From Vitrella brassicaformis CCMP3155 (lineage: Eukaryota > Protista > Chromerida), in NCBI GenBank assembly GCA_001179505.1, contig CDMY01000086.1, positions 131,520-195,519 on the forward strand: DNA of 64,000 nt. Reading direction: 5' to 3'. Shown here piece after piece: positions 39,258-43,152 of the stretch (positions are counted from its first letter, which is position 1; the number at the start of each line of letters is the position of its first letter). The position numbers and the translations under genes are program-made. The notes below the pieces were generated by a model. It did no database searches. It was not told where the DNA came from and worked only from the letters and a program-made list of their open reading frames with translations.

Positions 39258-39750
39258 GAGTCGATGGCCGCCAGCTGAAGGAAGGACAAGTACACACCAG
39301 ATGCATGCGATAAAGGAAGCAGGCAGGCGGGAGCTCGAGGTTCTGTACTCGAGAGCGGAGCCTGTCCGCGATGGCCGTCAGTTTAGCGATCTCTGTGCGG
39401 TTGTTGTTGTTGTTGTTGTTGTTGTGTAGTGTCTGCAGAAGGGCTGTCTTGTCCTCCGAGTTGTCCTCGTCCGCCTACAGGCACCCAAACGCATGCATTC
39501 GCGAGTACGCATAGAAATGAATCCGCATCCCATTCAGGAGCATCACAAATGGCAGGAGCATCACAAATGGCAGTGCCTTGTCGCATGGCATGTGCACGCC
39601 TCACCATTGCGGTGCTGCATAGGGCGTGCGGTCCGTCACATAGAAAGAAAGAAGGTCTGCCGATTCTTCTCCGTTTTTATTTTTGAAAATATGGAGAATT
39701 TTCGTCTCCGTCTCTTTCTCGACATCATTTCCCTTTGCGGGTGGGAAAGG
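38527..39750 (-). CDS. Hypothetical coiled-coil protein with poly-Asn and poly-Ser tracts (may be upstream exons of the kinase-USP gene)
   Basis: Exon-like segments with GT-AG borders: [44 protein letters not shown]...[18 protein letters not shown]|[10 protein letters not shown] and GMGMPPGMG. Confidence 0.45.
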
Positions 39751-39808
39751 ATGGCAAAGGATTGTGGGGAGCGATTCGTGCGATCCGCTCACCTCTAAGC
39801 TCGCACAA

Positions 39809-40651
39809 ATGGCGGCCGTCAAAAGGAAACTTGAGGAGCAGATCTCGTCATTATCCCGACGTCTACCGCTTCGTGCGATGAGCAGCACCAGTGGCGTGTC
39901 GCCCTTTCACCACGCCGTGCCTGTTCATGATCTCGGAGCTGCGAGGGTGTTCTACGGCGACTTGCTGGGCTGCAGCGAAGGCAGAACCTCCCCAGGCAAA
40001 TGGATTGACTACAACCTGTGAGCAATGCCGCAACAACACAGACGGGCCCTGTTGATTTCTACGAATCTCCGTCAGGTATGGCAGTCAGCTTGTTTGCCAT
40101 TTTGTTGGTGAGAGCTACAGAGCGCCTGAATATGTCAACCCCGTCGGTATGCCCACCTGCACTGAAGTTGTTAGTGTCGCACACACACACTTGTGGTCGA
40201 TTGATGCGCAAAGATGGCGATGAGGTGCCCGTCCCGCATTTCGGGTGTGCGCTGAGTGTCGATGAGTTCCATACTCTCGCGGCCAGGCTCAAAGAGAAGG
40301 GTGTCCGGTTCGTCATTGAACCACACCGGAGGTTCCAAGGGCAGCCAGGTGTGTGGCGCAGCCGATGGAGAGGAGAGGGCAGATGCCATACTGCCTCTAT
40401 GTATGTCATTGTGTGTGGGTTGGCGCAAGGTGACCAGTGGACCATGTTCTTCAAAGACCCATCAAACAACGCGCTGGAATTCAAAGCCATGGTACCTGGA
40501 TGGGTGCGTGGGTGGGAGGGATTGGTGGGGAGGCGAGTGTCATCTATCGTTGAGTGCTATGACTGCTCTGTCTGTCTCTGTGGGCGACGTTCAGGTGCAT
40601 CCTGAGAATCTGTTTGCTAAGTACAATGTGGACGATTTCGCTGACAAGTGA
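39809..40651 (+). CDS. VOC/glyoxalase/bleomycin-resistance family protein (COG3565-like), multi-exon
   Basis: [95 protein letters not shown]. The ~25-aa basic N-terminal extension may be a targeting peptide. Confidence 0.88.
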
Positions 40652-40970
40652 AAATGCATAATCGTAGCGTGGTGTACAAGGGACGAGGGGCACGGACATG
40701 GTAGAGCCGCTGCGAGCTCGCCCGCGTTTTCTGAGGGTGAAGTTAACTGTCTGGAGTTAACGGTGAAGTTAACGAACTGTACGCTGTACGCTGTAGACCA
40801 ACATACCGAAGCACTCCTTGCTTGGTTCCATTCCCTTCTGGCTGCACCCGCTCTTCCTTTCCTTCCCTTCCTTCTCCTCTCATCTGCGGGCTACGCTTTG
40901 CCAGCTTACACCCCCTACACGACTCTCGCACGAGCGCCTCCTCCCTCTGCCGTCCGCCAGGCCATCAGCC

Positions 40971-41333
40971 ATGAAGACCTTGTGGCTCCTCGCTCTGGGC
41001 GTGCTTGCCTTGGCTGCCGCGCACCAAGCCGGCGGCGTGACGTCTGCGGATGACGCTCAAGTGGCTGACGCTGTGAGCGCTGAGGGTGGCCTGCGTGGGC
41101 TGACATACTAAACCACTGAGCATCATGGGAGTGACGCCGTGAGCGAGCAGAGGCGGTGTTTTAACCAACACGGCTGCAGCAGTGGCGAATATTGCCACTA
41201 CGAAAACATGTGGGACGTGTCGGGCACATGTAAGCACTGACCACAGACACACACAGTCGATCGACGCCAGGCCGTGTGCCTCATTCAATGTGTCCGTCCA
41301 TGTGTGTCGCTTTCAGGCAAGAGCAAGTGCTAG
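40971..41333 (+). CDS. Small secreted Cys-rich peptide precursor (predicted 3 exons: 40971-41072, 41151-41229, 41317-41333; 65 aa)
   Basis: Signal peptide MKTLWLLALGVLALAAA, acidic spacer, then RR and CFNQHGCSSGEYCHYENMWDVSGT-CKSKC*. Introns gtgagc..gagcag and gtaagc..tttcag are both phase-compatible. Confidence 0.6.
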
Positions 41334-43152
41334 CCACTAGGCGTCCAATTCAGACAGACACTGCAAGTTGTGTGCCGCTGTTTGTTGATGTATGTGCATT
41401 CACACAGCTGCCTTGTGTGGCTTGTCGTTGCGTTGTGTGGCTTTACTGACAATCAGTGTGATCATCTGACGGTCCTCTGCTGTGTATTGGTTCATTGTAT
41501 TTTCACCAAGAGAGAGAGAGGGGAGGGAGAAGCTGTGGTGTCCACACTCTTACACACATGGTGTAATCAGCTTTTTTTCTCACGATGCCGAAACGACTTT
41601 CTTCTGGCGCATTCGTTTCTGTCTGCCAAGTGCACACACACGGCACACATGTACTCTTCTATGTTCGTTCTGTGGCACTCCCTTGCGGCAATCGGTCCAG
41701 TCGGTCAGGCGGCTGTGTGCGTGTTGCGTTGTGTTTCGGTGTTTGCATGTGCCGCCGAAAAGGGGCGCGCTGCAATCCAAACCGATCTCGTACGACGTAC
41801 GTGCAGCTAGGCTGGCCAGGGAATGGGGGGGGTGGGGGGGCAATCAATCCGTGCACTGTGTCAGCGAGCGATCCATCCATCATCAGTCGATTGCTGCATG
41901 CGATGGATCTATGGGTGGGGCGGGTGGGGGGGTGGCTCGGTCTATATGTCTTATATATTCTGGGGTACGTGTGCACCGGGACGGATAGATGGGATCACAT
42001 TGGGGGGGTCGGGTGGGCTGAGACACCGAGGGACAATGCGGACATGAGAGACAGCACATAATATGAATGCCTTCACATCATGCCTTTGTGCGATGTGGCC
42101 ATTGGTCGTTTGGATCTCCTCACTCATGCTACACACACATGAACCACGATGAAATTCTCTCACACACGCCATGTGTGCACTGACACGTCCAACAGCCATT
42201 GTCTCCAATCGACCTAGGACACTGACTTTGTTGCTGACAGTCGCATAGCATACGGGAAAGGAGTGAATTCCCATCGATCCCCACACTCAGAAGCGCATCT
42301 CTCTACCCTGTCTCCGGCTTTGTATGCCTCTCTCCATCTGCATGCAAGATCCACACAGATGGACACCTCCCTCTCGCGAAGACACGAACTAACAGAGACA
42401 GCGAGGGCGTGCACCTCGAGGCTTCTCGCCCACCCCACATGTGTGTCCTACATACAGATGTCGTCTCCCGATGGATAAGAAGTGACAGACATCCGGAAAA
42501 ACTGCCGGCAGGATGATGAAATCATCAATCAAGAGACACGGACACAACACGTACACACGTCATGAGTAGGTAAGCAGCACAAGGAAGGGATGAGTGAGAA
42601 TACGGCAGGCAGGCAGGCATGTAGCCAGGCAACCAGGTTCCCACGTGATCGATTTATCGAAGACGGTCGACGCGCAGCTTCCGTCGGTCCGGCTCTCCAA
42701 AATCTCTGTCTCCATCCCATCCGCCCCCACAGAGAGACACATCTCACAGGGCGCCGGGATGCATTTGTCAATGTCCGGGAAGACAGATAGGAGCTGCATG
42801 CATCCCACACGCACGGCACGGAGGCGTTTGTTTCATTAGTTTTTTGTGATGCTTGCCGTGTCTTTCGCACTGTCTGCGGCGCAGGCCTCAGAGCAAAATG
42901 GAATGCAATGTCGTCAAGTGATATCGATGGCCCATAGTGATGTATGTCATCGCTTCTTGAGTCGCGCATGTATTCACGCATGGAATGAAGGCAGTGGAGC
43001 AGCAGGTCTGCGTCATCATCCATCCATCCATCCGTCTAACTCACACGCACCGCACCTATCGATTCCCTCGTCGGCATACATGCCGTTCAACTCAGTCAAC
43101 CGGTCCTTCCCTCTAAGTGTCCATCCATCCGTCCATCCATCCATCCATCCGT

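Follow-up and report, generated by a model that had tools for sequence, protein, structure and literature searches.

We read positions 40971-41333 of the window, the whole 64,000-nucleotide stretch of Vitrella brassicaformis DNA analyzed here, as an unannotated copy of a family of small secreted cysteine-rich peptide precursors that has been seen only in Vitrella. This copy is probably a young pseudogene or null allele, with a nonsense codon in the pro-region that removes the payload. The assembled sequence allows no more than a 46-residue leader, without any payload. The locus by itself, being probably a dead and unannotated copy, carries little weight. In the family behind it, a free-living alga related to the malaria and Toxoplasma parasites combines a conserved leader with payload modules that can be swapped and diverge fast, and so builds small secreted cysteine-rich proteins. 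Toxins, defense peptides and recognition molecules elsewhere follow this design too.

The window belongs to contig C86 of the strain CCMP3155 assembly (72.7 Mb, 1064 contigs). The original prediction had read the locus as a prepro-type precursor of a toxin- or defensin-like peptide, interrupted by two introns. Direct reading shows its letters and coordinates to be correct for the ATG, the stop, the RR, the cysteine spacing and the borders of the second intron. As an observation it stands in part: the sequence features, the second intron and the micro-exon hold, and the first intron does not. The same is true of its interpretation, in which the prepro layout and the second intron are supported and the first intron and the toxin or defensin assignment are not. 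The family is not described in the chromerid genome paper (PMC4501334), and literature searches on Vitrella secreted cysteine-rich peptides, DUF7107 and chromerid PEXEL/ASP5 turned up no account of it.

Organization of the locus

The ATG at 40971 opens a hydrophobic, signal-like start of 17 residues, followed by an acidic stretch. Beyond an in-frame TAA the same frame runs through a short acidic spacer to an RR and a cysteine-rich peptide, and translation confirmed the predicted RR and C-x5-C-x5-C-x11-C in frame past the stop (Table 1). The signal cleavage site was placed by eye using the -3/-1 rule. The mature peptide has four cysteines in the module and one in the tail, an odd number that might, as the prediction proposed, permit covalent dimers; it is slightly acidic and contains two histidines. 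The ancestral gene would have had two exons, the first (40971-41229) encoding the signal, acidic pro-region, GGLRGL, spacer, RR and four-cysteine module. An 87-nt phase-1 intron inside the last cysteine codon would then have led to a 17-nt micro-exon giving CKSKC and a stop.

Table 1. Features of the locus, in window positions; identities are at the DNA level
Feature	Position	Strand	Support or comparison
Conserved 5' flank and 5' UTR	40706..40970	+	78.5% identity to C277 paralogue
Signal peptide, codons 1-17; hydrophobic core, AAA before likely cut	40971..41021	+	98% identity to C277
Acidic pro-region, GGLRGL (41085-41102) at its end	41022..41108	+	91% identity to C277
In-frame TAA stop	41109..41111	+	TAC (Tyr) in C277, C520 and C650
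Pro-region spacer and dibasic RR (41151-41156), in the ATG frame	41112..41156	+	Near-identical spacer in paralogues
Divergent 4-Cys module, C-x5-C-x5-C-x11- and first base of fourth Cys codon	41157..41229	+	56% identity to C277 (46% with gaps counted)
Phase-1 intron, 87 nt, GTAAGC...TTTCAG, fourth Cys codon split T|GC	41230..41316	+	Paralogue introns; 96% identity to C277 at intron start
Terminal micro-exon, 17 nt: completes Cys codon, then K-S-K-C and TAG (41331-41333)	41317..41333	+	Homologous micro-exons elsewhere
Conserved 3' UTR	41334..41709	+	85% identity to C55; 67-87% to two C277 loci (87% in the comparison with the C277 paralogue)
Proposed intron 1, judged coding pro-region and no intron	41073..41150	+	Read through in paralogues

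The expectation that such a gene would be missed by annotation was correct, and no protein on record has the N-terminus found in the window. A word-based protein search with the 46-residue leader returned no match of 25-80 residues, and exact look-up found no encoding contig on record for the 46-residue product or for P0002, the transcript ORF described below.

A leader shared by four loci

A search for paralogues had been proposed with the prediction, and it yielded three loci with the same leader. The leader is thus common to four loci, namely C86 (the window), C277:110k, C520 and C650. The paralogue leaders show 91-98% DNA identity, and protein identity to the C650 leader is 85-97% across the four loci, which we refer to as the MKTLW-leader subfamily. 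A word search with the C650 ORF matched only P0001, an annotated CCMP3155 protein encoded at C520, and P0002, an MMETSP transcript ORF of the C277 type. Beyond the common leader, C277, C520 and C650 each have a different cysteine-rich end, and the match of C520 and C650 to the window (94-95%) begins at the ATG and goes no further than codon 60.

Paralogues conserve not only the leader but also the 5' flank, the 3' UTR and the beginning of the second intron, which is more than chance would give. It is very improbable that the cysteine-rich frame is a chance ORF and no part of a gene. The window peptide does go unscored by a leave-one-out family profile and has no Pfam match above threshold, as a chance frame might. 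But the frame is preceded, in phase, by a leader and followed by a terminal intron, a micro-exon and a 3' UTR, all of them homologous to parts of expressed or annotated genes, and the cysteine codons at both ends of the module align with those of the paralogue.

The terminal intron and micro-exon

The second predicted intron (41230-41316) and the micro-exon CKSKC are backed by an annotated paralogue and by a paralogue transcript ORF. An exact copy of the first 22 nt of the intron occurs at C277:110k; the version at C277:138k has a G in place of an A, and that at C130 carries two further changes. All of these starts come after the last cysteine codon of a module. A T|GT ending was found in ten modules of seven other loci. 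On its own locus (C929), the annotated Vitrella protein P0004 has the same terminal intron, a micro-exon reading C-R-R-H-stop and the same 3' UTR start. All proteins matched by a word search with P0004 were from Vitrella. In unspliced C277 DNA a stop stands two codons past the cysteine, whereas P0002 continues, and because of this stop P0002 cannot be made from unspliced C277 DNA. Homologous micro-exons are present at C55 (CKKKCP-stop), C277:138k and C929, the locus of P0004. The window module ends in a phase-1 intron within the last cysteine codon, followed by the micro-exon and the shared 3' UTR.

The proposed first intron

The original prediction also placed an intron at 41073-41150, which would remove the in-frame stop. 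Paralogues at C277, C520 and C650 read the same stretch in frame as coding sequence, and both the transcript ORF P0002 and the annotated P0001 keep it as protein. C277 lacks the GTGAGC donor through a 9-nt in-frame deletion, and an in-frame loss of this kind is how coding sequence behaves. Splicing would also take out GGLRGL, which in at least ten loci is the best-preserved block of the pro-region. In seven introns of the family the 25 nt before the acceptor are 36-44% T and 52-76% pyrimidine; before the proposed acceptor they are 12% T and 36% pyrimidine. The stop can be bridged by 18 in-frame GT..AG pairs drawn from eight GT and six AG sites; one canonical-looking pair is therefore expected by chance and has little weight.

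All of this tells against a functional gene rescued by splicing, in which a 78-nt in-frame intron would excise the stop and join a shortened pro-region to the RR and the cysteine-rich peptide. We consider such a rescue quite unlikely, even though the donor hexamer GTGAGC at 41073 is also used by family introns, the 78 nt were counted as falling within the 80-90 nt size range of those introns, the reading frame is kept across the junction and the remainder of the window gene is undamaged. More generally, a "cryptic intron" placed around an in-frame stop can mask a pseudogene.

The in-frame stop

The stop lies at codon 47. Among the four loci with the common leader, only the window copy carries a stop within it, and the frame from signal to peptide is interrupted there. 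Because the three paralogues carry TAC, the ORF stop at 41111 is a TAC-to-TAA difference, and the reading of it as an exon end is not borne out. The leader differs between the window and C520 by ten nonsynonymous and no synonymous changes, a ratio consistent with relaxed constraint, although by our own arithmetic zero synonymous changes out of ten would arise under neutrality with about P = 0.06 and is thus only marginal. The TAA is the one sign of damage in this copy, the module frame, the splice sites of the second intron, the micro-exon and the promoter-like block being intact.

Such a condition could also be that of an intact gene, in which the TAA is an assembly or consensus error, a polymorphism of the culture or a codon that is read through, and which encodes a precursor of about 91 residues with the full pro-region. 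The sole lesion is one base, four near-identical leaders could give a collapsed or mixed consensus, and an N run is present in the repeat region of the paralogous C277 locus. However, the window leader carries nine further copy-specific substitutions, and so has the look of a separate copy that was resolved well, and not of a consensus mixed from several. Proteins of 25-215 residues on record with such an N-terminus are P0001 and P0002 only. Among the family genes there is no sign of TAA reassignment, and TAG or TGA ends them. We thus regard an intact gene as unlikely, and retain the young pseudogene or null allele as the probable state of the window copy.

Divergence of the mature region and evolution of the family

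Identity between the window and C277 drops in the mature part and is higher on either side of it (Table 1). Measured over 22 codons, pS in the mature part reaches 0.75 and pN 0.42. Positive selection was considered and rejected, as pS is as saturated as pN on these 22 codons. With both values saturated, the payload is therefore either old or swapped in, and we make no claim of positive selection.

The module of the window has in common with the family modules only its cysteine spacing and a G-x-C end. Searched against all six reading frames of the window, a leave-one-out profile built from the other ten modules misses the peptide, with a score of 3.5 bits and E 7.8. The peptide is assigned to the family by its gene position and cysteine spacing. 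A transposable element was rejected as an explanation of the copies, as their flanks differ and they have no repeat ends.

Other copies are mosaic or decayed. At C277:138k an exon end and intron in the 5' part are in common with C520, but the modules are different. At C55 only the micro-exon and 3' UTR are left, and at C130 one module has an apparent frameshift. A family with such further mosaic and decayed copies most likely reflects birth-and-death evolution, as far as the sequences can tell.

The C55 piece (L005 1323-1617, minus strand) reads C-K-K-K-C-P-stop followed by the 3' UTR, with 85% identity to window positions 41317-41720. An unrelated ORF ends about 400 nt before it, and neither a leader nor a module is present upstream. 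C277:136.8-139.7k (L006 1050-2500, minus strand) holds a multi-exon gene with two tandem units flanked by RR. Each unit consists of a six-cysteine part, C-x7-C-x5-CC-x3-C-x4-C, and a four-cysteine module, and no leader was found for this gene before the contig end. At C277:110k the N run stands right behind the first module (L002 about 1112-1411), and the second spacer-plus-module repeat of P0002 must fall in this run or in an unread stretch.

The pro-region and its candidate processing signals

Support for the prepro layout comes from its homology to a family of Vitrella genes in which one close member is annotated and another is transcribed, although the first intron that had been part of the predicted layout is unsupported. 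Its most constant element is GGLRGL, which occurs in at least ten loci with two leader types. The prepro regions of the two types align over their whole length, with GGLRGL as the strongest shared block. Its place at the boundary of leader and payload makes it a testable candidate processing signal. The dibasic RR is present in the window, as had been predicted, but it is no family feature: a dibasic site is common to the window and C277 (RK) among the leader-sharing loci and is absent in C520 and C650. P0002, the transcript of the closest paralogue, contains the spacer and peptide twice, with G-R-K before each peptide. These two repeats have the layout of a precursor that is predicted to be cut into pieces.

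From the conservation of GGLRGL and the repeated spacer-peptide layout of P0002, we infer processing at GGLRGL and at dibasic sites. In an intact member, the signal peptide would direct entry into the ER. Cleavage at the dibasic site, and at GGLRGL or beyond it, would remove the pro-region, and a disulfide-bonded peptide of about 29 residues would be secreted.

GGLRGL could conceivably serve as an R-x-L maturation site, cut after the Leu by a clade-D aspartyl protease of the plasmepsin V or ASP5 type in the secretory pathway of this free-living relation of the Apicomplexa, an idea that we rate as a long shot. R42-G-L44 lies 25 residues past the predicted cut at residue 17 and so falls within the 20-30 residues given for R-x-L, as a pattern match only. 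The fifth-position E, Q or D of PEXEL and the RRL of TEXEL are absent, with R-G-L-T-Y in the window and R-G-L-Q-S or R-G-L-K-P in relatives. If the idea were true, processing of the PEXEL/TEXEL type would predate parasitism, and would first have served the maturation of secreted cysteine-rich proteins. The codon pattern of GGLRGL showed no excess genome-wide (31 as compared to 51 in the reversed control), and of these matches only those with a signal peptide upstream were taken as meaningful.

(S/E)-GGLRGL ends the acidic pro-region in the window and in L041, L042, L043, L044, L066 and L045; C400 has SGSLRAL. In the second leader type, MALISRL or MALFSRL, the cysteine-rich domain begins 2-5 residues past GGLRGL. 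Transit peptides are unlike an acidic post-signal region, and a plastid-targeting leader was rejected by eye as the region past the signal is acidic.

Resemblance of the module to known domains

The reading of the peptide as a toxin or defensin found no sequence or fold support above threshold, and the peptide is not cationic. Searches and folding were made with separate exons and pieces, the stop being left in place. In Pfam scans the window piece matched DUF7107 (PF23416) at 17.9 bits (E 0.004, profile positions 21-47), below the cut-off of 24.6. DUF7107 scores for the C130 and C277 modules were similar and likewise sub-threshold, as was EB. Dickkopf_N (PF04706) gave no match for window pieces at E up to 10, whereas P0004 scored 23.2 bits against a gathering cut-off of 25 (profile positions 29-50).

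A module profile (HMMER) searched against 1.84 billion representatives gave 11 matches at E <= 0.001. P0004 was the sole Vitrella protein among the six whose source was looked up, and the non-Vitrella matches came from a Polyangia bacterium, from Diplonema papillatum or were of unstated origin. As homologues of the window peptide these other looked-up matches were rejected, being tandem C-x2-D-x-D-C repeats that sum weak scores. One of them, P0005 (D. papillatum, KAJ9463712.1), has repeat units with a window-like C-x5-C-x5-C-x11-C that includes C-S-S-x-E-aromatic-C, a match in spacing that could be convergence or a distant relative.

AlphaFold2 (AF2) modeling of the window peptide reached a best pLDDT of 84, with three of five models at 50-57. 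Among the best Foldseek rows for the model was the knottin MCh-2 (2m2r; TMq 0.61, rmsd 1.8 A over 28 columns, E 6.2), and in VIA the best row was Evasin-3 (Z 2.1). The best rows of a PDB sequence search were squash inhibitors such as 2eti (E 0.8). The nearest ESM Atlas clusters were spider knottin toxins at 0.81-0.82, below 0.9.

Our best guess as to the role of the family, reached by inference only, is that its products are diversified extracellular ligands for defense or recognition. They may instead be extracellular metal-binding or surface and matrix proteins rather than toxin- or defensin-like peptides, a lesser but real possibility. Same-leader relatives such as P0004 carry long His/Asp/Glu-rich tracts beside their modules, P0015 also has a transmembrane-like hydrophobic stretch, the modules of C277, C130 and C929 are His-rich, and the window peptide is slightly acidic rather than cationic. 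Against this, the mature part in the window has just two histidines, and strong divergence between conserved flanks, as seen there, better fits molecules in contact with other organisms. Pfam scans of the window pieces and the paralogue modules matched no metal-binding family.

P0015 (C496, L066) is an annotated relative of 267 residues that UniRef names 'WAP domain-containing'. It has the same leader type, a ten-cysteine domain, a long His/Asp/Glu-rich tract and a hydrophobic stretch resembling a membrane span, and it may be a surface-anchored metal binder.

Comparison with known precursors

Conotoxin gene superfamilies combine a conserved leader with a diverged mature peptide. Conotoxin precursors are like the Vitrella precursors in their layout of signal, pro-region and short cysteine-rich mature peptide, and the pattern of change is similar. 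The leader is near-invariant (98% and 91%) with its synonymous sites almost unchanged, and the mature part is more diverged than the surrounding non-coding DNA. Unlike conotoxins, the Vitrella genes have no sequence homology to them and no venom context. The signal, pro-region and module share one exon, and the only intron splits the last cysteine codon. In addition, with the mature pS saturated at 0.75, cassette replacement or homogenization of the flanks fits at least as well as positive selection.

Dickkopf_N and DUF7107 offer a second comparison. UniRef calls P0004 a Dickkopf N-terminal cysteine-rich domain protein, and a search with the module profile A2 retrieves P0003, whose repeats are clearly of the Dickkopf_N/DUF7107 kind. 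In contrast to the ten cysteines of Dickkopf_N, the window peptide has four to five, and all Vitrella module scores lie below the curated cut-offs. What they have in common is a generic hairpin motif, C-x2-D-x-D-C...G-x-C, which bacterial repeat proteins contain as well.

Knottins, represented by squash trypsin inhibitors, spider ICK toxins and Evasin-3, supply the best structural and sequence rows, none of them significant (E 0.8, E 5-6, Z 2.1). The paralogues C650 and C277:138k have a knottin-like C-C-CC-C-C pattern. The window peptide differs from the six-cysteine knottins, with four cysteines in the module and five in the peptide. A module with four could form a knot of three disulfides only if the extra tail cysteine and a partner took part.

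Multi-copy precursors of the kind cut by kexin or furin resemble the family in the G-R-K repeats of P0002, in the RR on both sides of the C277:138k modules and in the RR before the first cysteine in the window. They differ in that the site is absent in C520 and C650, there is no homology and the cleavage sites here are predicted. Euplotes pheromone precursors, which join a conserved pre-pro part to a variable secreted cysteine-rich part, are like the Vitrella family in layout, with no homology.

Sequences upstream of the ATG

Three GTTAAC palindromes, at 40742-40747, 40756-40761 and 40768-40773, are spaced 12-14 nt apart, 203-229 nt ahead of the ATG. Only five GTTAAC sites occur in the 64 kb of the window, three of them in this 5' flank. 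At the C277 paralogue the triplet recurs at much the same distance from the ATG, and a single site lies at -70 in C650. The triplet is a candidate shared promoter element and provides a lead beyond annotation. Further upstream, at 39683-40605 on the plus strand, ORF pieces split by introns resemble, by eye, a glyoxalase/VOC-type protein.
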